The translations under genes and the position numbers were made by a program. Positions 24,501 through 44,998 of a DNA stretch of 64,000 nucleotides are shown here, one piece after another. The stretch's first letter is position 1. The number at the start of each line of letters is the position of its first letter. A model generated the notes under the pieces. It was not told the origin of the DNA. It saw nothing but the letters and a program-made list of their open reading frames with translations, and ran no database searches. The DNA is from Botryllus schlosseri (Eukaryota): contig CM119381.1 of the NCBI GenBank assembly GCA_051294905.1, positions 26,040,001 through 26,104,000 of the forward strand, written 5' to 3'.

Positions 24501-27500
24501 TAATTCATACTGATCACGTCATAATGTTAGAAATATTTTAAATCAATGAACATTGAAAATACTGATTGATTGAGTTGATATCAGACTCGGAAGATTAGAA
24601 TTAGAGCTACATTACACTACACAGTATTTTCCAAATTAGACTAGAATTAGATTATAGCTACAGAGGTTTTCCATGCTAACAAGAGATGCACGGGAGCTAT
24701 TACAGAACAATACCAAATTTAAAACTGTGTATCTTAGAGAGTGCATAATCTCAAAGACGTCTTAATGACAGTCAATACACTGGAAAGGAATCATCAACTT
24801 TTTCTGTTATATTTGATATAGCTTAGAAAAACAAAATATATTACAAATACAATCCTTTACTGAGAGGGATGGTCAATACCAACAACACACCACAACAACC
24901 GCCTCCTAGCAACATAGTTTTGACAATACACAAGAGAAATGGGCTAGCGCACCACAATACAATAGTAGAGTGTTTGCTATTATATAATATTAGTATGGAA
25001 TTTACCACTCAAGTTCTCGAGTGTGATATATATCGTTCCTTCACCTGACATCACAATAGCCTAATAACTTTCCAGCAGGTGGGTATGAAGATAATCTAGT
25101 AAAGCAACATAAGTGCACCAACTTGGCTGATTTCCTCATATCTTTTCATGGCTTAACCTCAGTATTGGCAGTTACAATAAAATAAGGCAGACAGCCTGTT
25201 TAGCAGCACATGGAAAATTCTCAATAAACCAGTTAAGTGAACCGACAGATTGAAATACGATATGTTTCACGAATCTCGTCACAACAATAGCGCTCATGAA
25301 ATGTAAATAAATTCTACGATGACAGGTATAATGAAGTCATAACAAAGGTGAGGCCGGTTTCAACTGAAAGGGCAAAGGTTCGTCTGAGAATCATAATTAT
25401 TCTGACACTGCAACTATCGAATGAAAAATGTGACTTGTTACACATAGGTATACAATATCTCAACCTTAAAACGGAAAAATTCGACAAACACTACCCCAGA
25501 AAATTGTCCGCTAAAGATTAGATTAGAACGAGAACTATAGCTATACATTTTTTCCCAAATTACACTGACTCATAGCTACACAGATTTCACCAAATTGGAT
25601 TACAATTACGGAAATGTATGTATACAACAAGCTTGGCCCCGTTTCGCACTATACAGTTCCAGCAGCCAGGTAAACCAGAAATTGGATTAGAATTAAAATT
25701 AGAGCAGAGAAACAATTCACAAATTGGATTAGAATTTGATAACCCGCATTTCATTCTAATTGGTTCAAATAGAGCTAATTAGTTTTCCAAGTCTTAGCGC
25801 TACATCTATATCTGACATTCCTAAACATAATCAACCATGAAAATATAACGATATACATCCAATTTTTTACAACACACTTCTGTAAGCCACACTTCGCAGA
25901 CTGCCGCATTCCAGAGAATGAATGGTGCATGTCACTAATAGATGGACTTGACAACTCCATTTAGCATAGAAACCATTACAGATCAAAGTAGCCAAGCTAT
26001 TCAACTCCAGACAAATTGCACAATAATATACCAGCAACAAAAAACGGCATGTTGTGAAATCAAACATATGAAAACCAGGCAGAGGTTCTGAACTTACTTG
26101 TGGAATACTCCTCAAAGGCTTCCTCTCAGTTGTCTTAGTTGTCGAGTCCCCATTATTAGATTCTGGCTTAGTACTTGATTCCATAGGATCAGACATGGTG
26201 CCTGCAGACGATTTACAAGCAGATAATATAATTCTACACATTACAGTACAAAAACACAGCATTAACTCTGCATACTGAACTATTCTATTAGCTACAAGCG
26301 GTTCACTATTCCATGAAACATAACACAATATACCAGCACTAAATTTGAACATAAAGTATTTACATAACAAACATTCCAGCTTGTACCGTAGGATTAAATT
26401 CATATAACATGTAAGTCTGCGACACAATACGGTAAATCCCAAATTCAAAAGCTGCACTGCAGTACGTAGTCTCTATTGAAAGCTAGTTAAGCAATCATTG
26501 ATAGACGGACCCATTCCCGTTCATGTGAAGCGTGAGCTTAAGGTTTATCAACAACAAACACGGTTTCAAGTATCTTAAAATATGTTATCAACTTTATAAG
26601 TGGACTTCCGTCAAGAGATGACCTACTTCTGACATGAAAGAGTTATCTAAAAGTAGGCTAAGACTTTGAATTTAGACAGACAAAAAGACAATTTAATAAA
26701 TCCATACCATTAGCATATTGGCCTTACGGAACTCTATACAATTAGACATTGGACATACAGAAAGCTTCCACTACGTATGGTGACTTGAAAAGAAGATCAA
26801 TCTCATTATTAGTTCCTTGGCACTTTAATATGCTGCCATAACCAGAACTGCTAATACATTAACCAAAAATGATCAACAATCCTGATAACTGCCAAAGATC
26901 ATTGAATAAATATTACTGAATATTACTCAAAAAATATTAATCAATTAACTGGTATAGTTGAGAACATTGAACCATGGTCCTGAAACCTGATTTTCTGATT
27001 TAAATGGTACCTAATACAATTCGTAATTCTATAATATATTTAATGTGTATTGAAGTTAATTCAAGCTATTTTAAATCCGAATTGAAAATTTCATGCCGGT
27101 GACATAATATTTTGTGAAACGATTGTTGATATGCAATGTTCTTTCCAATTCTCTACTAGTTGTTGACGATTACCCCTGACGAGTGTTAGGGGACAATATC
27201 CGGGTTCGCATTGATCAATACGAATATACTATCCAATTGTATATTGAAGTTCTGTACCTTCACGAAGCTCTTAAAATTCTACATCTATAGGATCTTTCAC
27301 AAACTACTTGTATGGGGACAACGTTAATGGTGAAATAGTATAACATGTAATTTCTTACCTAGTTCTGAGGATTTTGACCCAAAAGTGGATAGCGCTGTAT
27401 CCGTGAGCACTGACATGTTTTCCTGCAGCTCTTTTGCACTCTCTAATGAACTTTCAATCACCAGAAAATCTTTGTGCGACTGGATAGTGCTCTCCATTCC

Positions 27501-30500
27501 AAACGTCCGGTTACCAAAGCCTAATCAGAAGACGTCATACAGTCTTAATTAAGCGGACTTAGAATATGTTTTCAGGATGTAAAAGTAATATATTACATTT
27601 TTTCAAACCGCTACCACTACTAACAGCCAGCTGCACTTGGGATGATAGAGCATAGGACACTAAGATTCTCACTAGGTGTCGCTAAAGGGAACAAGATAGG
27701 AACTAGGCCATATCGACTAGGATCGTAATTCATAACTTGAAAAAGCCAGAATCGGGTGGCATCTGATGGCAATGCCAAATAGAATAGAGAGGAAGGCTGC
27801 GCATTAGAGATATTTCTATTTTGTAAAAGAAGATATGGCAAAGAATGAAATAACCACACGAGACATCACGAAAAGGAGCATATAGAGGAGATTTATCTGC
27901 TGCGGGAACGTAGACGGAGATGTCAAGAAATGAAAAGTAAACAAACCTCTTTCCGAGCTCTTGGCATCAAATGTTGCATGGTGACTGCCAGAAACGCCAA
28001 CCACCGACATCTCTTTGGTCTGCGCATCCAGTTCCACAGCAAACGTATGATTAGCTGTAAATAAAATGGGACATTTCCAATTGTTTTTAAATGCTACGAA
28101 CTACGGTAAACTAATCGACCAATAGTATCTAAGACAGTTGTTCTTAACCTTTGCCAAACTAGTTAATCTGCAAGCGTTCAGGGAACCCCAAATTTTCGCC
28201 AAGTCGCAAAACCAAAAATCTACCATATTACACATTACCATAGAATGCTGCTGCACAAAATGAACTGTGCATCAAAAACAGTGTTAATATGTAAGAACCA
28301 TTAAAACCATGGTCACGCAAATCAGTGCGTGTTCATCTGTATGAGTCGGTTTTGTGTCTTCACCTCGACAGGGGTTCATTTAAACTGTACTTAAGAGCTC
28401 CTGTTGGCTTACCATATTTTGAGATCTGAAAAAGGGGACATGTTTTACGAGTTACAAAAGATATAATAGCATACGAGAAAACGGGTAAAAATATTATTGT
28501 GTTGACTAAAAGAAAAAAAGGCCATTTTATGACTCGATCCTACCTCTTGCCACTTCATTGTTGCTTCAGGTCAATCCCCAAATTGAATGGACCTCTTGGG
28601 TTGTTACGCGATATTCAATGATTAATTACGGGTTGGTAGAATAAAATTGTTTGACGAAACAAACCTCTTTCAGAGCTCTTGGCATCGAATGTTGCATGAT
28701 GACTGCCCAAAGCACCATCCACAGCCATCGACAATTCTATGGTTTGAGCACTGCATTCTGCCGCGAACGTCTGATTAACTGAAAAAATAGAACTCCTTTA
28801 ACTTTTAATCGTATTTTGACCTCTCGCCACTTCGTTGTTAAATCAAAGTTCAATGAATTTTTCAACTAGTTTCACGATATTCAACGCTTTAATAATCGCC
28901 GATCAGTACAGTGGTTCTCAACCTTTTTGTCTTCGCGGACCTTTTCGGACCGTCACGGACCCCCCACGAAGTATTAGTTCTTGCAAATTATCTTGCAATT
29001 GTCATATGTCAGGTGCAGATGACAACTGTACAGGCTTAGTGATAAACAGCAAAAAAAATGTCCTCTCTTGAAAATAAGATCTTACTATTTCATGTAGAAA
29101 ATGGGTAGACTTCTATTATTTCAAAGCGAATTCTGCAACTGCATTTCCTGAAATACGTGGTCGTGACTTGAAAGTCGGCGCCTTCAATATGATATGAACG
29201 AGTGCCGAAAATCCATTTCCACAAATATAGGTGGTGGAGAATGTAATAATAACGCGCAACGCTTCCGACGACACATTTGGGTATGATCGCAACTAATATG
29301 GCACCAAAATTGACAAAAATTTTTTAATGAACATATAACGTCATGCCTGGTTATTTCTATCTAGCAGATTACCTTGAAGTTATTATGGAAAAAGGGTCGA
29401 GTGTATCACAGGAGAAAATGGATTTTTGTAAACATTTCGAAGTCACCTTGACTGACCTTACTCACCCAACTTTTTTCCACAATCCCCAACAAAACATCTC
29501 TAAACAGCAAAATGTTTGTATAAGTAGGCTACTGGCAATTTAGCAATTAAAATGAGTCTGCACAGTAGGATATTTCATCTCAGACGGCCATTCTATTGAT
29601 GTGCGCTCTGGAGTTTTAGTATTAATGAAGCGAAACTGCCTCGTTCTTTTCCGAATTGAAAAAAATACAAATTAGGTTATCAACTATTTTGAGGCTTCGC
29701 GGTCCCCCTGAAAATGCTTCGAGGACCCCCCCGGTTGAGAACCACTGGATTAGTAGATATAATATAAGATTGTGTAAGTAAACAAACCTCTTTCAGAGTT
29801 CTGGGCATCGAATGTTACTTGACGACTGTCCAAAACGCCATCAACAGCCATTGTCACGTTTTTGGCGGCTGTACTGCGTTCTAGAGCAAACGTCTGATTA
29901 GCTAAAAATATAAGGGCTCGTTAGAAAGAAATAACACTGAACAATAATAATATTAAAAACACACTCTTACTGCGGAAATTATTCGGCAATTGGGTTTGTA
30001 CCAAAAGTTAAAAGCAACTCACTAGTTGACTTCAAATCGAATGTAGCGTTTCGTATATCTGGAGGTAAATCGCTGTTGCCGACTTGAAAGGTGTTGTTTG
30101 CGCAGGCTTCCAGAGCTATAGACCGTAAACTGGTGTTGGGAGTCTGTAGTTTTTCGAAAGTTTCATTCCCTGTAGAAATTCACATTAGCCAATTGTGGCA
30201 CGCAACCAAAATCTTATCAAACTCCTATCTCCAACCCAACATTGAACAATACCTGATACTGTGGGCATTTCATGTTAATCTTAGGGGGTTTAATAATTTA
30301 GGAGCCATACTTGTATTCGCTAGATGGCGTATGGTTGACGAAACCTGCTGGTCTGGTCTAAGGGAATATTCTGGATATAGCTGTGATTGGGTACAGTTTG
30401 TCAATAGTAATTGGCCCAACGGACGTTCCCCCACTGTATCTACCGATCTTGTTGGGACGATATCTTATTCGTGCTACTATTGTGTCTTATTATATTTGGA

Positions 30501-33500
30501 TATAAGGAAATTCGATCAATTGGAACTTCAAGCAATATACTGTTTTCTACCGTACTTCAAGATCGCGTATATTTACATCGGGAAACTAATAGGACTTTGC
30601 GGCGCTGTCAGTTGAAGGGAAGACAGCTTACACAGAATCATATATGCAGTTCAGCGACCGCAACAATACCTGATATCATAATTACTTGTGCATGACACAC
30701 TGAATTTGGAATACATGTGCTTTATATGTTGGGATACCGGAAACCGGGGTAACTTTGGACTTAAGGGTAACTTTGGACACTAAGCAGTAAAAGATTTAAA
30801 TGGTTATTTATGGAAAAGGGTTGCTGCTGGAGGTCCAATTCTTTTTCATGTGGCATCAGTACCACAAGTAGTCTCAATAGAAGGTGGATTCGTTTCACTA
30901 CACGATAAACTTGACCCAACATTGATAAATTAATGGCGGCCCGGGCTCATATTCTTCAAAATTAATGGTCATTAAACTTCTTACAACCAAACATAGATAG
31001 CATGTGATTCACAGATTAAAAACTTGGCAGCAGATACCTCTGAGCAGGCTTAATCCATGGCAAAAATCTCAGTGGGCTCACCCTTAGATCGATACAGGAA
31101 AATGTGATGTCCAAAGTTACCCCGTCAAATTTTATCAGAACGGGGTAACTTTGGACAGTGGAAAATGTGATATTTAGAGCTCTGGAAAGTGGCTGCTTCA
31201 TCTGTGTCAAAGTGTATGGTCAACTATATTCCTTATTACCGGCCAGATGGCTTTTTAAAATGGAATGAGAAGGTTAATAAATTAGGAGTTCGCCAAAATA
31301 TGAAAAAATGGGTAGGCAATGAGCTCAGAGATTGCAATCGGGTGTAAGCTACTTCAAAAATTTATCACATACTCCTAAAGATGCGCCAGCTGAATATGGG
31401 ACATCGTAAATTATGACAAATATGTCCATCAGAGGACATAGGAAAGGGAAAGTGTATCTTTTAAAGAACAGTAATATATTTGAAATCTGAAATAAATCAC
31501 GGTAACATGTTTAATGTTTGCTGTCGATTGCTGACACTGCCAGTGGGATACCCCTTATCACCATATGTTATTTATAAGTCCCAATTGGCGAAGGCATGAG
31601 AAAAATTGAGACAAGAGATGAATAAGAGGGCATTAGCCTTCATAAACTACCTAATTTTTTTTTTTGGGGGGGGGGTGGATTAGGTAAAAATCATGCAATA
31701 GGCCAGAAATATACTATTTTGTTTCAGTTTTAGCCACTGCTCTCATCAACTCTTATCAAATAAGCCTCATTTACGAGGTTTCATAAACAATTGAGTGTAA
31801 AGGCGTACAAAAACTACATTGTCCAAAGTTACCCCACATGCAGGGGTAACTTTGGACACGGATAATTTACAAAAATAAGGTACTTATTTATGACCATGAA
31901 GATTTTGGATTAGGTAATTCTAATCTTTGCTCCATGACCCGAAAAAACACAAAACATGCCTCCCCTACACCCTAGCATTTCCGAGATACAAAGCGGAATT
32001 GTTGAAAATTGTCCAAAGTTACCCCGGTTTACGGTAGCAAATTTGAATATTCTTTATAGCCCGAGTACTGCAAGTACTGGATATCCATCATCACAGACCT
32101 CATCTTTGATACATTTATATCAAGTGTTGTGCATAGGTGGCACATTTTCCAAATGATTGATTAGGATATCTCAAATGTGAAGTACCAATGTGATTGGTTA
32201 GCAGCACTATCAAAGAGTAAGATTGCTATTCAAGTTGAATTATAACATCAAAGATTTTGGGGCACTCGAGTATAATCAAACGGGACAAAAGACATATCTT
32301 AAACCACCTAAAAGTTTTGTATCATTTGATTCAATTTCTTGGTTTGAATAAATTCCATGAAAAGATGACACAGAACGATCTTTCCCAGATCTGCACACCT
32401 CAATTGACTAACAGGCTGCATAGCAGAAATATCATAAAAGGAGGAAATATATTACCGAAATTGATCACTCTATTAGATCCGCTTCCGTTGGATGATACTG
32501 ACACAATCCTCTGTCCGTGGAATGGTGTAGAAGCGGCATAAATACCTTTCAAAAGAAATAACTTTCAATCGAAGTGATAGCAGTGGACAAATATTTAACA
32601 TTGGTAAGTGAACTAAGAATATTTGTGTTATAATTGTCACGCTGATTTCATAAGAAATAACTTCTCACAGAAACCATATAACTGGTAATAGGTAATTTTG
32701 CTAGGCTACAATATGAACTAGGAATAGGATGGATATAACTATCATGCAGAGAAAGATACAGTGCAGACGGTTATGTGAGCCGTTCCACTTAAGAATGGAA
32801 TGGACAATACCTTCAAATCGGTAACTCATCCCCCATCAGAAGGATGAATTAGTAATATGATGCACTGCCCAGTACGTAAATCTTTCGACAGTTTTTATCT
32901 TTAGATATAAATCATGATGATATGCTGTGGCTTACCTCTACTGATTGGAGACTCATTGCAGCTCTTAAAAGGTAGGTTAATTTTCTTTGACTGTGGTGTT
33001 TGGAACTGAGGAGATGATATCTGGAAAGTCATGTTATCCAAGTAAAATAGGATAAATCAATTGATTATAGGCAAATCTGGTAAATTTTCGGTTATTCTGA
33101 TGACTGCTATGATGATTACCAAGCATATGCTTCGTCAATCAGTCAGCATCTGAGCGAAAACCTTGCCTGTGCACAGCACTATGATGACAATATGTTCACT
33201 GTCATTGCGCGTGGTAGGTCTGCGTTTCATTTATAAGTGTTGGAGTCTACTATTATTCAGTTGAGCAAACCTATTTTATGCAGACAGAAAGATTTCCTCT
33301 ATAACCTACAAATTTCTCATTAGTGCGTGTTGTTCCGTGCGTGTAATTGTTTATTTACAAATTGTGCTGCTACTATAGTACCGTATGTCCGAATACTTCG
33401 TAGTTTGTTATTGTTGCCATTGATACGATGCGAATTTCATGGTCTGTGATTTTGATTGTTGCGTCATACTTTGCCTTTTTGGTTTTGCTTTTAAATCTGT

Positions 33501-34693
33501 TTAAATCCCTTTAGTGTGCCGATAACTCTTGAAAAGAGGCACCCGAAAAGTCTTCGAGTTTAATAAATATACTGCTGCAATGGATGTTGTATTGGAAGAT
33601 GTTTAAACTTGGTTTAAATGGTGAATACGTAACAAATATTGATAACCATCAAAATCATTTCAAGGTTTACTACCAAGAACAGAAACTGTTGTACAACAGT
33701 GTTGGGATTACTTGTGACGCGCACATTGCTCAAACGACTTGGCCTCAAAATATTTGATGACTTGAAATTGACTCGAACTTTGAAAATTCGAGATGACTCG
33801 ACACGAATCACTTTGAAAACTGACGTGATTGCGACTTGAAAAATTTGAAAATCCCTTGTTGCAGACTTGAACGACTGTTGCATCATATAACACAATATAT
33901 AACCAATCATATCAACACTGAATTATCTGATATTGATGTTAATGTGAGAGACAATGCATTTAATTAAATTCTAGGTTCCAACTTCAACTCGGGATAGCCA
34001 TGAACAATTGACTTATTTCGGTAACTGAAAACGGGTAGCACAGCAACGGTTGAGAACCATGGCTCTGAGTTTACGATTAATTCAAATAATTTGCATATCT
34101 TAAAACAAATTAAAACCAACTAATAACAGAAATCATACCAAGCCTTCTTCAATCGCCGTCGGTTTCTTGGCTGCAGAGCCTGAGCTACCAGGCTGAGGTG
34201 ATTCATTTTCGTCTGAAAAGACACCCTGCAAATACAAGAGATTCGTGGTCAATAGCATTGTAACATCACAGTAAAGATTCTAGAAAATGAGGTTATGTAG
34301 GCTGATGCGTTTTTAATAAGAGCTGTGAAGAAGTTGGAGCATGACATCACGATGTAATATAGTCCATCTTATTCTTGATAATCGATTACAAGTGAAAATC
34401 AGATGTCACAGTCACAGACGCTAAGAGCTATAAGAAGACTCGTCATTAGAGGCAATATTGTGAAAGATATCTGACTCAAAGAGTCTCTTGGGGCTACATA
34501 TCTTCAATATACCAATGAATAACCGTCGGTGTTCTTTTCAATTCATCGCTAGTGGCTGACGATTATCCCTAACAAGTGTATTATTGAATTATATCTGACT
34601 TACCGCACACGATGGTAATCTCGCATCCCATAACCAATTGACATGCGATTCTTTAGCCTTTTCATACAGAGTTTCGAAATCACCATCTTCCAT
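15547..34693 (-). CDS. MTUS1/2: MTUS1/MTUS2/CCDC69-family microtubule-associated coiled-coil protein, 20 exons, ~887 aa
   Basis: Phase-consistent AG/GT exons: 34693-34604, 34225-34139, 33020-32936, 32545-32456, 30169-30023, 29901-29788, 28778-28665, 28054-27947, 27520-27359, 26201-26098, 23437-23339, 22687-22438, 21394-21293, 20728-20606, 19374-19289, 19225-19144, 18460-18147, 17397-17299, 17236-17118, 15835-15547 (2664 nt); optional 30370-30311. C-terminus EVESMTSVLEMKNDAIHKLQIK...QQNEDLSSRL...EQLRYRL matches the family ELESL..VLE[IM]KN...QQENEDL...EELL[WY][KR] region; VALAVLLDHVV matches the helix preceding the coiled coil. Confidence 0.8.
16755..16881. mobile_element. Partial GACTCGAGTC-rich hAT MITE (one end)
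   Basis: Ends in TTGGTTACAACCCTG; same family as 17478 and 19912. Confidence 0.7.
17478..17988. mobile_element. GACTCGAGTC-rich hAT-type MITE, full length
   Basis: TIR CAGGGTTGTAA / TTACAACCCTG; near-identical interior to 19912-20471; no clear TSD. Confidence 0.85.
19912..20471. mobile_element. GACTCGAGTC-rich hAT-type MITE, full length
   Basis: TIR CAGGGTTGTAA / TTACAACCCTG; TSD ATTATTGC / ATTAGTGC (7/8). Confidence 0.88.
21671..22130. repeat. 42-44-bp minisatellite, ~10 units, with dimeric A/B organisation
   Basis: Unit starts at 21696, 21738, 21781, 21824, 21867, 21909, 21952, 21994, 22037, 22082, ~22121; core CAAATTAGATTAGAATTA[CG]AATGATAGCT. Confidence 0.92.
22865..23047. mobile_element. 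Partial reverse copy of the GACTCGAGTC-rich MITE
   Basis: Ends in TTGGTTACAACCCTG with GACTCGAGTCAAAACTA. Confidence 0.7.
27112..27275 (+). repeat. Dispersed ~160-bp repeat with CTGACGAGTGTCAG core (hammerhead-like family)
   Basis: Aligns over its length with 61931-62090; partial copies at 17993-18060, 21528-21600, ~34550-34580 and 51310-51395 (reverse). Confidence 0.8.
28909..29747. mobile_element. hAT (Charlie-like) MITE, 839 bp, in an MTUS intron
   Basis: TIR CAGTGGTTCTCAACC / GGTTGAGAACCACTG; TSD GATCAGTA / GATTAGTA (7/8). Confidence 0.88.
30737..32034 (+). mobile_element. pogo-like Tc1/mariner element, 1298 bp, internally deleted, with decayed DDE transposase
   Basis: TA TSD; 24-bp TIR CCG[G/T]AAACCGGGGTAACTTTGGAC; about seven GGGTAACTTTGGAC copies in both orientations; frameshifted remnants DIVNYD..., EDIGKGKCIF*R, ITV..., SPYVIYKS (~31400-31595) resemble pogo NYDET..DDPG..KCI.KRG...PYVIYK. 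Confidence 0.8.
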
Positions 34694-36608: not shown

Positions 36609-37145
36609 ATGGACACATATGTCAGAAACGAGGCATGGATATCAAAGGAAGCTGCGGAAAAAAAGGTAAACCCCCCGAAAACACATGTAGACTTGCAACG
36701 CTTGAAAATTGATAAACTCATGCGAAAACCTGACAAACCTGTCTTCATTCCGGAGGCAAAGAAAGCTTGGAAGCCCCGAGATGCCCCCGAATTCGTTCGA
36801 GATGTTATGGGCTCCAGTGCGGGTGCAGGGAGTGGGGAATTTCACGTTTACAGGCACATAAGACGGAGGGAATTTCAGAGGGAAGCTTTTCACAGTGAGA
36901 TGGAAAAGAAAGAGAAATTGGATCAAGAATATGAGCAGCTTGTACAAGCGAATAAAGAAAAGGCGGAGAGAGCGACCGCAAAGAAAAGAGCAAAGCGACA
37001 GAGGAAGAAACAAAAAATGCAGTTCAAGAAGAAGAAACTCGAAGATCAGCAAAAAGATAACGGTAAGGAGGAAGAGCAGCGGGAAAGTGATGAAGATGAG
37101 AAAGAGGAAAAAGAAGAACAGAGTTTTGTTATGGGTGGGAAATAA
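36609..37145 (+). CDS. PRKRIP1: PRKR-interacting protein 1 (spliceosomal), 178 aa, uninterrupted CDS
   Basis: Signature APEFVRDVMGSSAGAGSGEFHVYRHIRRRE; Lys-rich coiled coil; C-terminal SFVMGG. Confidence 0.96.
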   Translation: MDTYVRNEAWISKEAAEKKVNPPKTHVDLQRLKIDKLMRKPDKPVFIPEAKKAWKPRDAPEFVRDVMGSSAGAGSGEFHVYRHIRRREFQREAFHSEMEKKEKLDQEYEQLVQANKEKAERATAKKRAKRQRKKQKMQFKKKKLEDQQKDNGKEEEQRESDEDEKEEKEEQSFVMGGK

Positions 37146-38017
37146 GCGTCTGTCTAACAAGACTTAATATCTTTCACATAGCGGTGAGAAAGCCTTCGAA
37201 ACGGGGCAGCAACGGGCTCGTGCAGGCATTAAAACCTTCAGCTCGATCTCGTATCTTGTAAATCAGACCCTGCATACTTGATCTGGTTCATCTAATCATC
37301 TGCTCTATGGCGGCCTAATTGACCGCGCAGCTTTTTATATTGGATATATCGTGTTCAAACTATTAGATCACTCTTAAAATGATGTCTTCCAACTTTGAGC
37401 GATTCCTAGAATGGCCGGTTCCATTCTGACTCAAAAAAGTATGCATATCGGTATTATCATTGTGGAGTCGTTGGTGCGGTGAGATTGTTCAATCTTCATA
37501 ACAATGCCGATGTCTGGGTGTTTCAGTGCCCTGACTGTATAGTAAATTCTTGAAATTGAGAATCGGACTATACTGCCTGAGCTGTAAAAATTCAGGATTG
37601 TACTTTTTCCAGTTTTATCCCTACAAATATTGGTCCGTATCAATTTTGCAATAGATGTATTGCGATTTTTGGGGTGGACGTCCACAGATCCAAAAAGTTG
37701 CAATGTGGATCATATTAGGATACAGTTCTGGGTGAATTATTGTAGGCAATGGTATGCCTTTTGAGAGGAATAGTAAATGATTGTGCCGACGAGCGACGAA
37801 TCCAAGAGTTGATGTTGTTTCATTTGGACATGAACAGTGATGAATCAAAAGTCATGAGCCTAATATTATTTACAATTTCAATTGTCAGTTTTATTGATCA
37901 TTATTCCAAGTCTCTGATGGTATTAATATTGTGTTACTTGTACAATCCGAGTGCGGGTTGGTTACATTTTAACATTGCTTTTTTAATTGGCCAGGCGATA
38001 GGTTATCACTTTCCGCC

Positions 38018-39856
38018 ATGCCTACTATATGCAGAAAATGTAATCCGCGGCACATGAAATATGAATTGCAATGTGCTCTGCGATCCTGTCAATCGAGGGG
38101 ACTGTTACAGACTGTGAAATGGCTCGCGGAACAATCGCTCTCCTTAAAATGTGAACCAGAGAAACCAGATGGAGATGAAGAGAATCAACGATACGTCGTT
38201 ACTGGTGATGTTGATGCTGAGGAGACACGCTCTAGAAGCGAACTGGATAATTTCGCTGTTGCTAAGTCATACTTCGATCTCGGGGAGTATGATAGAGCAG
38301 CTTTCTTTTTGGCACAAGATACTTCGAATATTGGATACTTTTTACACATGTACTCGAGATATAAATCTGCGCTGAGAAAGAAACAGTTGGGACGCATAGA
38401 CGACCATTCCACTTCAAACAGAGTGCACTCTAAAAACGAAGAGTTGCGCGTGTTGAGAATGGAACTTTCTAAAAAGCATAAAAGCAATAAGTTGGATTCA
38501 TTTGGATTATATCTCTACGGAATTGTGTTGAAAAAGACGTCAGAAGGTTTGGCGCAACAGAGTGAAGCTACTGACATCTTGTGTCAATCCGTTAAAGCAT
38601 ACCCCATGAATTGGAGTGCTTGGTATGAGCTATCTAATGTGATCGCAGATCAAAATATGTTGTCAAATCTACACCTTCCAAAACACTGGATGAGAGACTT
38701 CTTCTATGCAATTACACACGTTGATTTAGTCAATATCGATGACGCATTCCCGATATACAATGATCTCAAACTATCCGGATTTAATGAGAGTATACACATC
38801 AAAACGCAAGAAGCAATAGCTCATCATAACAAGAGAGAATTTGACGAAGCTATCACAATGCTGGAAGAATTGCACCGAGAAGATCCATACCGCATTGAAC
38901 ATATGGATATCTTGTCTAACATGTATTACGTAAAAGACCGTAAAGTTGACCTTGCGCATTTAGCGCATCATTGCTGTGAAGTCGACAAATATCGTGTTGA
39001 GACATGCTGTATCGTTGGAAATTATTACAGCATGCGAGTTATCCATGAAAAAGCAGTTATATACTTTCAAAGAGCTCTCAAGCTCGATCCGAATTATTTA
39101 GGAGCGTGGACTCTGATGGGGCACGAATACACAGAGGTCAGCAACACGTCTGCCGCTATTCAAGCATATCGTAACGCTGTTGATTTGAACAGGCGTGACT
39201 ATAGAGCATGGTATGGACTCGGGCAAACCTACGAGCTGTTGAAGATGCCGTCTTATTCTCTGTATTACTACAAACACGCTCATAGGTTGCGTCCTTTCGA
39301 CTCTCGCATGATTATGGCTTTGGGAGAAACCTACGAAGCGCTGGGTCGCACGGAAGAAGCCAAGATGTGCTACAGGAAGACTGCCGCTGTCGGAGATATA
39401 GAAGGGATGGCTCATGTAAGACTTGCGAAACTGTATAAAGATGAAGATAAAAACGATTGGGCTGCATATTATTACGACAAATATCTCTGGCAACTTGAGG
39501 AACATGGGATTGTCGCCGATACAAAAGCACACACGGTCGCTTACGTGTTTCTTGCGAATTACCACTTGAAGACGACAAAAAATTACGAAGCAGCCACCTA
39601 TTACGCACACAAGTGCCGAGAATTCCCTTCCGTCCGAGAAGAGGGGAGTGCCGTGCTCAAACAGATTTCTCAATTGAGAGCAGTGTCCGGTCATAAACCA
39701 ATCGACACACTGCCGGCTGAGTTAGCACAGCCAACACCGACGCATAATATGATTGCTAGTGTCGCTATGGACACGGATTCACCCGGTGGCGATTTTGCAC
39801 CTATGAAATTGTCGTTTTCACCTGGCCCTGTCGATTCTGATACTAGTAATCTTTAG
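38018..39856 (+). CDS. CDC23: APC/C subunit 8 (CDC23), 612 aa, uninterrupted CDS
   Basis: RGLLQTVKWLAE, AKSYFDLGEYDRAAFFL, DKYRVETCCIVGNYYS, AWTLMGHEY, DYRAWYGLGQTYELL; TPR array. Confidence 0.97.
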   Translation: MPTICRKCNPRHMKYELQCALRSCQSRGLLQTVKWLAEQSLSLKCEPEKPDGDEENQRYVVTGDVDAEETRSRSELDNFAVAKSYFDLGEYDRAAFFLAQDTSNIGYFLHMYSRYKSALRKKQLGRIDDHSTSNRVHSKNEELRVLRMELSKKHKSNKLDSFGLYLYGIVLKKTSEGLAQQSEATDILCQSVKAYPMNWSAWYELSNVIADQNMLSNLHLPKHWMRDFFYAITHVDLVNIDDAFPIYNDLKLSGFNESIHIKTQEAIAHHNKREFDEAITMLEELHREDPYRIEHMDILSNMYYVKDRKVDLAHLAHHCCEVDKYRVETCCIVGNYYSMRVIHEKAVIYFQRALKLDPNYLGAWTLMGHEYTEVSNTSAAIQAYRNAVDLNRRDYRAWYGLGQTYELLKMPSYSLYYYKHAHRLRPFDSRMIMALGETYEALGRTEEAKMCYRKTAAVGDIEGMAHVRLAKLYKDEDKNDWAAYYYDKYLWQLEEHGIVADTKAHTVAYVFLANYHLKTTKNYEAATYYAHKCREFPSVREEGSAVLKQISQLRAVSGHKPIDTLPAELAQPTPTHNMIASVAMDTDSPGGDFAPMKLSFSPGPVDSDTSNL

Positions 39857-40033
39857 CAATACTCCTCATTGAAGTAGCTGACTGCGAATTTATTCATTTG
39901 ATTCATAGACCTTACAGTCTGAAAGTCATTTGACAAGGGTGGGGACAGTTTCTTACCTATTTCAAGTGCTTGTATTAGTAGTATATGAGGTGACATAATT
40001 TCATACAGTATGCCTCAAGTAGTCCATGTAGAG

Positions 40034-40310
40034 CAGTGGTTCTCGAACTTTTCTTGGAGTGCGTATCAACAATTTAACAAAAAACTCGAATTCACTCCAA
40101 ATGTACGTAGAATTATGGACCATCATGTTTCTTCTCTGCAAGCTCATTTAGGTGGGCTGCAACCTAGTCAAATGATGCGTAAAGCATGCAACTGCATTCG
40201 ATGAAGATGTCTCTTAGATTGGAAAAAATAACCTCTGCAATTTGTGAAACTGGCATTTTTCTTGAAAAAGAAATACAGTTACTGTATGCACCACAGGTTG
40301 AGAACCACTG
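40034..40310. mobile_element. CAGTG-type hAT MITE between the convergent CDC23 and MIOS stop codons
   Basis: Ends CAGTGGTTCTCGAAC / GGTTGAGAACCACTG; TSD degenerate (ATGTAGAG / ATTTAGCC). Confidence 0.75.
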
Positions 40311-40359
40311 ATTTAGCCTAATGCAAAGTAGAAGTTGATTATCATGCTGCAGGTGACAA

Positions 40360-42993
40360 TCATGTCAACAAATTCAGTGCCGAGACGCAATTGCGACAGT
40401 CGCATAAGCATCCGGACACAGGGCAGTCGTTGTGTGCTGTAAACCATTCCTTGATGTGTTGCCGATGGCCGCCATGTTGACAAGATGAGCACCAAGTGAA
40501 GGAATTCTCAAGTATGACACCGTCTCGGTACGGGTCGTCTTCGAATTCGCTATCCGCTTGCGACGTGCCTAGTCCCAAACAGCAAATGGAACATCTTGGC
40601 AGAGGTTTGCGGCATTGCGGGCAGCTTATAGGCTTGCTGGCGTTTCCGCTACCCTGAATCTTTATCCCGCGACCTCGAGATACGGAAAATTTCGGATGCA
40701 TTATGCCTTTACCGCAGAAATTGCATAGCACGGATATTCCTTGGTAAGTATACTCGGATCGTTGCGAGGAATTGGGCTTGCCCAAGACTGTGTCGAACCA
40801 CGCTCTCTCTTTCCATAGTTGCCATAAATCCAGCAGTTTTCTGTAACTATTAATTATGAAACCGGCATTTTGATTCCGGGTAATATCAGATGACCCTCCC
40901 TGTATTAATCCAAGGGCGGCAGTTTGGACGTCCTTTGTTCTGTCAATGTACGCTTGCAGGAGTTCAATGCCCAAATCTGTTGTCAGTCCAGTAGCGATAA
41001 TACCGTCCAAGCAACCATTTTTCGCAGCATCATCACTCAATTCATCCATAACTACTGAAAGGCTCTCATCGTCTAAGTACATACAAGCGAACCCAATGCG
41101 GTCCGAGATACTGACCTCTCTCATTTTTAAAATCGATCTGAAATCAACTTTCGGCTCTTTTAAAGCCTTCAAAAATGCGAACGCAGCTCTGAAATACGGG
41201 CTCGGCATGTCTCTTTGGAGGTTGTCACACATTTCTCTCCATAACGGTGTCGTGTCATTAGCTGCATAGCCACTGAAAGCCATCGCGACTACAGCATACT
41301 GATAGGCCATGTCACCGTTACAATTTTTCAGTATACTAATCGCCAATTGCATGTCTAAATGCCACAACGCTAACACAGCGGCTCGTTCCAGATTTTTTAA
41401 TTTAGACAGGGACATCTTGAATTCAGTCGAGTCCTTTCTGATTTGGCATATACTGTACCAATCACACATGTTCAACGCTCTTCTCCTGTGTTCGCTGGAA
41501 TATATGGAGCATGATGAAGATGGAACTCCTATAATTGAAAATGATACACCTGAGCTGCTCGTCTGCTTCAGCTCTTTCTGGAGACCACAAAATCTACTGT
41601 TCAGTACTGTAGTAGAGCTTGCACTCCGTCCCCACGGTGGTCTGCCGCCATGGCTGAGGTTTGGCTTCGTGTCTTTCATGACAGAGATAGGGTAACTTTC
41701 TTTTGCAAGCTTTATCCATTTCCAAAATAGTCGCAAGCTTGTGTTATCTGGTTCTAAATTCACTTTGGAGTTTCCGTGGTCTTTCGAGTGATCGAGACCG
41801 TATCCATTTTTGGATCTCTTGTATATGATCTGTTCGATGTCGAGCAAGTTTGCTGCGTCGGAGGCTTGCTTTTGTTTGCCAAAATACTGGTGAATATGCT
41901 TGCAAGCGGTGACAAGTTCAGATTGATTAGTCCAGTTCAAAGATATTCTTTCAGGTATTTTCATTCTGTGTACAATTCCAGAATCGGTTACAGCTACAAG
42001 TCGATTTTCTGAATAAGGCAGCCATGCAATTGATGCTGTCTTCTCACTTGCGTTTAAAGGCAGTTTAACGATTTGTTCTACATGTCGGTAAACAATATCT
42101 GATTCACTGTCAGTAACTACAGCATGGGACGTATCATACACACGCACAACGTTCCGTTCACCCGACCCACTAGATATAGTAGCTAGGAAACCGTTTCTAG
42201 TGGGACACCAATCTGCTTTAATTACATTGCCCCTTGTCGATATGGTTGCGGCTGGTTTGGAAAAGCTTCTCAGATCCCATACATTAATTTGGTTTTCATA
42301 AAACGAAGCAAACCGACTGTCCAAGCAAGGATCTTGACATAATCCGAACACAGATTTTGTGTTCACAACTTGACTCGCAGTACGAAACGATCTCATGTCA
42401 TACAAACGAAGGAATTTTCCATTAACACCCGCTACCAATGTCCTAGGTTCTCTGTCAGACCACATGATTGAGTTTACGGCTTCCGAAAAGCACGATTCTG
42501 TTTGTCCTCTCAATTTATTATCAATAAGTCCAGTGACGTGTTCTTTCTTTGGTCCTTCTTTGAGCAGATTAGTAACAATTAAGGAGGACTCAGATCGACT
42601 TTTATCAAATCCAAAAGCTAAATACTCTGGCTGCATTTTATTCCAAGCCAGTGCTTTGCAAGACCTCGATGCTTGATACAGGAGAATATGGTTGGAAGTC
42701 AATGATTCCGGGTAACTGGGCCAAAGCATATAAACGCTTCCATTTTCCAATCCCACAGCCAATGAAATAGGATTTGTGGACTTTCCCAAACAGCACCATG
42801 TCATGCAGTTAATATTCCAAGAGTCGACATGCTGAGGTAAATCCGGCAGGGTGGCAGATGTAAGGTTGAAGTCGTTCTTTGTCAGTACCCCGTCATATTC
42901 ATTGGAGGATGGATCCAAATGAAGAAATTTTATGGAATCGTCCACATCCAAGGCCAGAAGACCTTTCCGTGATGGATTAGCTAGAAACTTCAT
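40360..42993 (-). CDS. MIOS: GATOR2 subunit MIOS, ~877 aa, uninterrupted CDS
   Basis: WD40 N-terminus (LAVGLENGSV, INVWDLRSF), SDRIGFACMYL, TKDVQTAAL, LLDLWQLWKERAWFD, C-terminal CPQCRKPLPRCSIC...FTWCSSCQHGGH...WF...CPVSGCLC. First ATG is 42993; the ORF-track start at 43038 is GTG. Confidence 0.95.
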   Translation of the reverse strand: MKFLANPSRKGLLALDVDDSIKFLHLDPSSNEYDGVLTKNDFNLTSATLPDLPQHVDSWNINCMTWCCLGKSTNPISLAVGLENGSVYMLWPSYPESLTSNHILLYQASRSCKALAWNKMQPEYLAFGFDKSRSESSLIVTNLLKEGPKKEHVTGLIDNKLRGQTESCFSEAVNSIMWSDREPRTLVAGVNGKFLRLYDMRSFRTASQVVNTKSVFGLCQDPCLDSRFASFYENQINVWDLRSFSKPAATISTRGNVIKADWCPTRNGFLATISSGSGERNVVRVYDTSHAVVTDSESDIVYRHVEQIVKLPLNASEKTASIAWLPYSENRLVAVTDSGIVHRMKIPERISLNWTNQSELVTACKHIHQYFGKQKQASDAANLLDIEQIIYKRSKNGYGLDHSKDHGNSKVNLEPDNTSLRLFWKWIKLAKESYPISVMKDTKPNLSHGGRPPWGRSASSTTVLNSRFCGLQKELKQTSSSGVSFSIIGVPSSSCSIYSSEHRRRALNMCDWYSICQIRKDSTEFKMSLSKLKNLERAAVLALWHLDMQLAISILKNCNGDMAYQYAVVAMAFSGYAANDTTPLWREMCDNLQRDMPSPYFRAAFAFLKALKEPKVDFRSILKMREVSISDRIGFACMYLDDESLSVVMDELSDDAAKNGCLDGIIATGLTTDLGIELLQAYIDRTKDVQTAALGLIQGGSSDITRNQNAGFIINSYRKLLDLWQLWKERAWFDTVLGKPNSSQRSEYTYQGISVLCNFCGKGIMHPKFSVSRGRGIKIQGSGNASKPISCPQCRKPLPRCSICCLGLGTSQADSEFEDDPYRDGVILENSFTWCSSCQHGGHRQHIKEWFTAHNDCPVSGCLCDCRNCVSALNLLT

Positions 42994-44998
42994 GTGTAAA
43001 TTGCTGCAATGCAATGACAGATGATGTAAAAACCACACAAATTCATTAATATACTTGCAGGTTCACAAATTCATCAGTTGGTTTTACACAAATGCTGATT
43101 CCGTTAGGAATGCTCATGAGGCCTATATTACATGAGCTCTCAATACACTAAATAATCATAGACATAGCCAAGATCATCATTTTGAAGTGAATTCAAATAT
43201 GGGTGGGGGGAATTCTAATAACCTGTCGTTGCCGATTCATTTTGATGCAGTAAAAACATATGACATCACAAAATGCATGTGGAAAATTTGAAGTCCTTTT
43301 TCTACCAGTGGCAACGCAATTAAATAAGATCATAAACAATTTTTATTGCAGTACAATATTACTGAATATAGTATATTCCTATTGAAATGAACCCGAATAA
43401 TATACTATTCCGAGGTAAGAGTTTCATTGACGGAAAGTTGTTTCAACTAAGTCTATTTTTCATTATTTTGCAATTACCAAGTTATTTTGAATCAATGAAA
43501 TATTTGAAAGAATGGCCTTTTAGGCTAGATTCTGCTCAGTACTACATCAAAATGACCCGAAATTGGCATGCAAATCTACTTAATGAACCATATTTAGCAC
43601 TATGAACTAGAAGATGCAAATTTCTTCACATTAAACAATCAAAACCAACCCAGATTGTAAATCTAACAAAAGTATGCAACTCAAAACAGAGATTTGAAAC
43701 TTTGAATCAACTTTCGAGAATTTTACCGCTGCTATCTTTTTGATACTACTGAATATTCTGCAAGGCAGAGCCCCCTTAAAACCATCACCTCGATGTCGGC
43801 TGTTTGCTAGATTCTATTCATCATAATGTCGCTAAAAATTGTACTGTCGAATTTTGTTAAAAAAGACTTCTTAGCTTGGGACAAGTCGAAAGTACCGTAG
43901 CCTATATAGTCCATAAACGTTACATCTCGTCAAATTACATTCTAATTCTAACACTGACATTCTAATGGTGTTTCATTTCTCTAATTATCGAAAAGTCTTC
44001 AAGCTCAACGTTTTTCAATTAACAATAAAATCGGAATACATTCGCCGGTCCACCGATCAGTGGTTGAAACCAATGATGATGATGATGAAAACCACTGGTC
44101 TGTAGTCTACATGAAAAAGTATTTGACATGCCCTCGAGCCTCTACGGGCAAATTGATGGATTATATTTCCCTCGTCAGTTAATTTCACAATACCTCTCAA
44201 TAACACCTGCATCAGGCGATATAATCATCAGGAGTTTGAACCAAAAGCAGAAGCACTGCTGAAGCATTGCCATGTCAGCTAGATTGAAAATTCAGCATCA
44301 CGTCGGCAATGGAAATATTCACCAAAAGGGTGCGCTGTTCGTCTCACATCGAAATCGTAGTTTTGAGTTCGATTCCGACCCGCCAGGTGATGCGAAAGGG
44401 CTTATGGCAAATCGGAATAAATAGTAATCTATGCAAACGTAGCGCCGACTTTCCATGCCTCCTTCACGTGACGACCGTTGATAATGCTTTGCAACGATGC
44501 GATTGTCAAGGTGCCGAGGTGGGTGTATTTGTAGACGCGGTGCTGCTGAAAATATCGACCGGGTCTTGTGACGGTCTGTAGCGAAGATTAGGAGCGCGGA
44601 GAGTCGGAATGATTTCTATAATAGTAATAATGAGCGAGAATCAGTTGTTGCGTAATTGCCGTCACGCTATTTTGGCCCGCATACCATAAGAAATAGGTTG
44701 TTAATGGGCGTTCGTTTCCGCCGTCGCTCAATTCGTGCGGAATGTATCCGTCTGCATTAATCGTTTGCAGTCTTCATGTCATTACCATGCTTATTAGATA
44801 TTGCGGTGCTGTCACAGCCGTCGTTTTCGAGATTCACGGTTTAGACTATCATTAGTGTAGCTTCCGACAGTTTATATTCAGTATGCTTGAAATATCGTTG
44901 CGTAATCACCAAAATGCACTTCGCGCGTAACGTTAGTGTGAGTTATAGCAGTTTGCATGTGAGCAATTATAATCTCCGGATGCTTACAGGTGTGTAAT

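Follow-up and report, generated by a model that had tools for sequence, protein, structure and literature searches.

The subject of this work is an array of five short exons in a minus-strand gene of the ascidian Botryllus schlosseri. It lies in a stretch of 64,000 nucleotides (GenBank assembly GCA_051294905.1, contig CM119381.1, positions 26,040,001 to 26,104,000), referred to here as the window and numbered from its first letter. The array is real, expressed and built by exon duplication, and its product is a series of short motifs centred on the dipeptide Thr-Phe (T-F). In the order of transcription, exon A (30023-30169, 147 nt) encodes NETF, NNTF and NATF, exon B (29788-29901, 114 nt) NQTF at its start and QVTFD near its end, exon C (28665-28778, 114 nt) NQTF and HATFD, exon D (27947-28054, 108 nt) NHTF and HATFD in the same positions, and exon E (27359-27520, 162 nt) NRTF near its start and LSTFG near its end. 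Read directly from the window sequence, each is preceded by AG and followed by GT, and all are in phase 1-1: the first two bases of each finish a codon and its last base opens the next one. This re-reading returned the coordinates, lengths, borders, phases and translations of the original prediction, which was made from the sequence without database searches. A predicted exon upstream (exon 3, 32936-33020) ends in phase 1 and the exon downstream (exon F, 26098-26201) starts in phase 1, so that any subset of A to E could be removed without a frameshift.

Transcript contigs show that these exons are used together. Of the words in the 5.9-kb stretch, about one in ten occurs in public runs, a fraction equal to the exonic share. 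The Logan contig X3 record 9 (1219 nt) is colinear with window segments 30170-30023, 28778-28665, 28054-27946, 27519-27358 and 26200-26098. Between the first two it carries 114 unlisted nucleotides (record positions 186-299), the exact length of exon B, whose inclusion we infer from this stretch; exons C, D and E occupy record positions 300-413, 414-522 and 523-684. Exon A is also represented in X1 record 5 and exon E in X1 record 1. The joints 28054>28665 and 26200>27358 have CT..AC ends, that is, GT..AG on the minus strand, and both were seen in the two runs, X1 and X3, which come from different studies. Since only RNA can lack introns, the exons are spliced and used together, and since one long contig includes all five they are not mutually exclusive. 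The proposal that they can be skipped freely is true arithmetically, given their common phase, but the single long contig has all five and no skipping joint occurs among the joints listed, beyond which there are 44 more. In the raw RNA reads of two further runs depth on the exons is about zero; the gene is therefore weakly expressed in those samples.

The product of the array is 214 residues long and includes seven N-x-T-F (NxTF) motifs among 11 T-F, a count which reproduces the seven plus four obtained earlier, together with ten N-x-S/T. The dipeptide accounts for most of the phenylalanine (11 of 13 Phe directly follow Thr) and N-x-S/T for most of the asparagine (10 of 13 Asn). None of 100,000 shuffles that preserved composition reached seven NxTF (maximum 3) or 11 T-F (maximum 7), and three reached ten N-x-S/T; these statistics are inflated by the paralogy of the exons. 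Exon A alone has three NxTF in otherwise unrepeated sequence, with NNTF in the middle of the exon, away from the splice sites. All 11 T-F of the modelled coding sequence of 799 codons lie in residues 88-301, within the array, and none outside it. S-F is absent from the array, though Ser is commoner there than Thr.

Such a density of N-x-S/T could mean that the sites are N-glycosylated in a secreted or luminal domain, and S-x-E sites (KSSE) are also present. We consider this highly improbable. The model begins with a hydrophilic, acidic N-terminus, neither a signal peptide nor a membrane span was found in any modelled exon (the first three being predicted), and what remains of the protein is a basic region and a coiled coil. 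The lack of a signal peptide makes N-glycosylation unlikely, as had been argued before. Furthermore, four of the T-F motifs have no Asn, so that what all of them share is T-F rather than N-x-T.

Exons B, C and D are clearly paralogous, with pairwise identities of 77-86% in DNA and 57-74% in amino acids and a similarity that extends for only some 10-25 nt into the flanking introns. Like length, the same phase and similarity stopping near the splice sites are the textbook sign of tandem exon duplication, and these three exons show all of them. The earlier idea of amplification by duplicated exons is thus supported by their paralogy, like lengths and common phase. Exons A and E have the phase and the motif positions of B, C and D. 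A hidden Markov model (HMM) of the unit, built from B, C and D, matches both weakly (expectation value about 0.7 in the window), at both ends and in the right order. Because their overall similarity to B, C and D is not significant, their status as homologous units rests on motif position. For exon E, previously described as a diverged fourth copy, the end motifs in the right order agree with that description, but the overall similarity is only weak. No further copies of the unit were found elsewhere in the same genome, nor any decayed copies in the window with the HMM. The five exons are best explained as one repeat array generated by tandem exon duplication, with one unit per exon.

Each unit starts with N-x-T-F-[A/E/G]-x-E and ends with [A/V/S]-T-F-[D/G]-x-[K/Q]-[S/N]-[S/T]-E, with a spacer between them that varies. 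Such an arrangement is that of a short-linear-motif array, presumably a disordered one. The residues N, T and F are retained while their codons differ (ACT/ACC/ACA/ACG for Thr, TTT/TTC for Phe and AAT/AAC for Asn), which places the constraint at the level of the protein. For comparisons among exons B, C and D, the ratio of non-synonymous to synonymous differences per site (pN/pS) is 0.32 at the two motif ends compared with 0.65 in the spacers. The contigs and the window show 16 allelic or strain differences over exons A to F; these change 13 codons, eight of them non-synonymously, seven in array exons and one in F, and all eight lie outside the motifs. The best explanation is that selection keeps the short motifs centred on T-F and not a fold. 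A single unit was modelled by AlphaFold as a lone helix with a predicted local distance difference test (pLDDT) score of 70 and without a compact fold; this came from a three-sequence alignment and is read neither for nor against disorder. A further NMTF occurs in the right frame at 33035-33024, within the acceptor region upstream of exon 3. It is non-coding, has no AG which would include it, and is probably due to chance or the remnant of a longer exon.

The array might, alternatively, be a largely neutral and lineage-specific expansion of a flexible linker, with the motifs as leftovers of recent ancestry and of constraint close to the splice sites. The ratio of non-synonymous to synonymous substitution rates (dN/dS) between paralogous exons is indeed high overall (0.57-0.80 for pairs with B), the motifs are located at exon ends where splicing signals also act, and the searches turned up no homologue. 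Yet synonymous divergence per site (pS) between the copies is already substantial, at 0.27-0.55, and their introns show no homology more than about 25 nt from the exons, while N, T and F never change although their codons do. In exons A and E the T-F motifs survive in sequence that is otherwise diverged beyond recognition, and the NNTF of exon A is far from any splice site. We regard neutral expansion as improbable.

The array is part of a modelled protein of about 800 residues (799 codons), assembled by hand with a simple chain of splice and coding scores. Among the transcript pieces shown, support covers exons A to F, and the remaining exons are predicted. The first coding exon (34604-34693), placed from splice sites and open frame, starts with MEDGDF, is hydrophilic and has no signal peptide. 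Exon 2 (34139-34225) is predicted from splice sites and open frame only. Exon 3, which has AG/GT borders and an open frame, runs from phase 0 to phase 1 and leads into exon A; it ends in G, in agreement with the additional base found 5' of exon A in X3 record 9. Downstream, exon F (104 nt, phase 1 to 0) is Ser/Thr/Lys-rich and has no T-F. Contigs from both X1 and X3 show it spliced to exon E. The 432 nt by which X3 record 9 extends beyond it are compatible with the predicted Ser/Pro/Lys-rich basic exons at 23437-23339, 22687-22438, 21394-21293 and 20728-20606, which come from the splice and coding-score chain. The predicted C-terminal exons (18460-18147, 17397-17299, 17236-17118 and 15835-15547, the last including the stop codon), identified by open frames and splice sites, would form a coiled coil of about 270 residues. 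The array itself is acidic (isoelectric point, pI, 4.9) while residues 302-527 of the model are rich in Ser, Pro, Lys and Arg (pI 11.3) and include SGIP, SLLP and TKLP, which fit [ST]x[IL]P and are SxIP-like, a match at the level of the motif and in predicted exons. This layout makes a microtubule-associated coiled-coil protein the probable host.

The original prediction had called this protein MTUS-like. The layout fits in its domain architecture, but the identity was not confirmed, all homology searches having come back empty. Pfam gave only generic coiled-coil noise below the cut-off for seven exon translations, and phmmer with the coiled-coil exon gave 0 hits among 1.84 billion representatives. 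Word-indexed searches, which cover proteins of 0.55-1.75 times the query length only, were empty for the open frame containing exon D and gave 0 hits for a 153-residue coiled-coil frame. Three Atlas look-ups returned generic coiled-coil proteins only. A lead is offered by exon 17397-17299, which would resemble the human MTUS1 coiled-coil stretch around VLEIKNEKLHQQDIK.

What might such an array do? The most favoured reading, which we hold tentatively and with rather less than even confidence, is that it is a multisite threonine phosphorylation module for a mitotic kinase of the Plk1/Mps1/Nek6-7-9 class, Plk1 itself included. The broadened Plk1 consensus, with E/D/N/Q at position -2 and a hydrophobic residue at +1, is common to Mps1 (PMC3076450), and Nek6, Nek7 and Nek9 share a Plk1-type consensus (PMC6570481). 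Eight of the 11 T-F sites, the seven NxTF and QVTF, fit it. The array lies within the acidic N-terminal part of the model, ahead of the basic Ser/Pro-rich region with SxIP-like motifs and then the coiled coil. A mitotic kinase would phosphorylate the eleven graded Thr sites, and this would shift the charge balance between the acidic part and the basic, putatively microtubule-binding part, or would recruit a phospho-threonine reader.

Several observations weigh against this proposal. E/D/N/Q is missing from position -2 of the remaining three T-F sites (HATF twice and LSTF). Plk1 accepts Ser no less readily than Thr, so plain Plk1 sites would not be expected to form an array made up entirely of Thr. 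The contrast in pN/pS comes from three short exons only, splicing also constrains exon ends (pS is 0.31 there and 0.48 elsewhere), and the sparing of the motifs by all seven array changes would be expected by chance about one time in three. Finally, no search confirmed the family membership of the gene.

The original prediction was more specific and saw a Plk1-type phospho-site cassette, in which Plk1 itself would phosphorylate the NxTF threonines and the number of exons would tune the dose. This is contained in the reading by kinase class but is graded separately, and in this narrow form we find it improbable, on a par with neutral expansion. The NxTF motifs do match the broadened consensus, having N at -2 and a hydrophobic residue at +1, and the reading frame would survive the skipping of any of the phase 1-1 exons. 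The consensus is, however, common to Mps1 (PMC3076450) and to Nek6/7/9 (PMC6570481), HATF and LSTF depart from it, every site is Thr and none is Ser, and the only long transcript contig retains all five exons with no skipping joint among those listed. With a shared consensus and three sites outside it, the sequence does not identify the kinase. Plk1 phosphorylation is a reasonable hypothesis and not a finding. The all-Thr core of T-F points to one of three things, a kinase with a preference for Thr, a reader that requires phospho-threonine or a partner that recognises Thr-Phe directly, and not to Plk1 in particular.

Direct recognition leads to a further possibility, that the T-F motifs form a multivalent binding array which is independent of phosphorylation or in which Thr is read directly, for example as an N-x-x-F turn for a PTB domain or for another peptide-binding module. 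The strict T-F core occurs in two contexts, with and without N at -2. Seven of the 11 sites have Asn at -3 from Phe, giving what we take to be a likeness to motifs of the NxxF/NPxF type. The flanks are kept too (A-x-E after the first motif and D-A-K-S-S-E after the second), a degree of conservation beyond the usual needs of a kinase site. On the other hand, none of the comparisons made matched the motifs to a known class. FFAT, RVxF, LC8 (TQT), LIR and SxIP were compared by eye within the array and rejected, none fitting all copies; RVxF fits only RQVTF in exon B. We consider a binding array unlikely, yet place it second, below the module for the wider kinase class and above both the Plk1-specific cassette and the neutral linker, which rank equally; N-glycosylation comes last. 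A literature search on the NxTF motif found nothing relevant.

The region around the gene contains several repeated elements and a small gene cluster. Most of the intron between exons B and C is an 839-bp element (28909-29747) bounded by perfect 15-nt terminal inverted repeats (CAGTGGTTCTCAACC), which shows very high depth in the transcript contigs. It looks like a hAT-type miniature inverted-repeat transposable element (MITE), its terminal repeats apparently resembling those of hAT elements. Just downstream of exon E, at 26985-27378, contig depth reaches about 20,000 in RNA-derived runs and there are strand-switching joints at about 27119-27225 and a palindrome at 27205-27224. This is a high-copy repeat or a hairpin-forming intronic element. 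Rfam gave no match for it or for any part of 15000-36500. Three minus-frame open reading frames (35925-35572, 35491-35360 and 13495-13364) share a ...SWSGNLEDGL... peptide, two of them being almost identical over about 25 residues. They probably represent a dispersed repeat or transposon fragment, with copies in the gene's promoter region and at a distance downstream of it.

The predicted first exon is divergent to a PRKRIP1-like gene at 36609. This is one of three intronless genes, PRKRIP1-like, CDC23/APC8-like and MIOS-like, in window positions 36609-43038. Their order and orientation are kept on a 6.2-kb contig of a relative (L007, 1-6199), whose PRKRIP1 is 71% identical; the contig stops 140 nt upstream of PRKRIP1, short of the array gene. 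The best named relatives of the PRKRIP1-like protein are from Styela clava (64%, the best), Phallusia and Ciona, and an exact look-up of the protein returned no record. PRKRIP1 is flanked by different genes in Styela clava (L004). The island, present in the L007 relative but not there, is therefore older than this species and not general in ascidians. The PRKRIP1 contigs of other relatives also have different neighbours, and the array was found in none of the fetched contigs, all of which were searched by tblastn with the gene model and with the unit HMM.

The present yield is a well-supported gene model and a motif, and knowledge of Plk1 or of MTUS proteins is unchanged by it. If the T-F sites were regulatory, the gene would illustrate, in compact natural form, the making of a multisite switch in a microtubule regulator by exon duplication, and the number of its sites could be read from the gene structure. 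Features of this kind are well known and would be a fairly ordinary route to a region of repeated docking or phosphorylation sites; this motif and the protein that carries it are new. Tandem exon duplication in other animal genes leaves the same signature as that seen in these exons. Many known duplicated exons are mutually exclusive alternatives, whereas here C and D (and B, by its length) are included together and lengthen the protein.

The closest resemblance of the host protein would be to the family of MTUS1 (ATIP3), MTUS2 (TIP150) and CCDC69, in which a long non-homologous N-terminal region is followed by a basic region and a C-terminal coiled coil (PMC11621681). The coiled coil is the conserved part of these proteins, which act in mitosis on KIF2A and KIF2C (PMC11621681). 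The SxIP-like motifs ahead of the coiled coil are as expected of an EB1-binding plus-end protein such as TIP150, but no search linked the present gene to the family. We know of no T-F array described in vertebrate MTUS proteins.

A different comparison is with KNL1 (Spc105), a mitotic scaffold whose disordered part has a tandem array of short Thr motifs, the MELT repeats, which are phosphorylated by Mps1 and Plk1. As in the array described here, residues of the E/D/N type are found at -2, and repeated duplication has left the motifs conserved and the spacers free. The class of motif common to the KNL1-type sites and the present ones is the consensus shared by Mps1 and Plk1 (PMC3076450). The two arrays differ in that the motifs here are N-x-T-F and A-T-F-D and not M-E-L-T, that each unit is its own exon, and that the protein has a basic region and a coiled coil but no RWD domains. 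By analogy, the array could conceivably be an ascidian-specific platform for multivalent docking, dependent on phospho-threonine and carried by a spindle or plus-end protein; it would be comparable to the MELT repeats with a different motif and a different reader, and its copy number would be tuned by exon duplication or skipping. We would regard this as a long shot, less probable than either the Plk1-specific cassette or the neutral linker.

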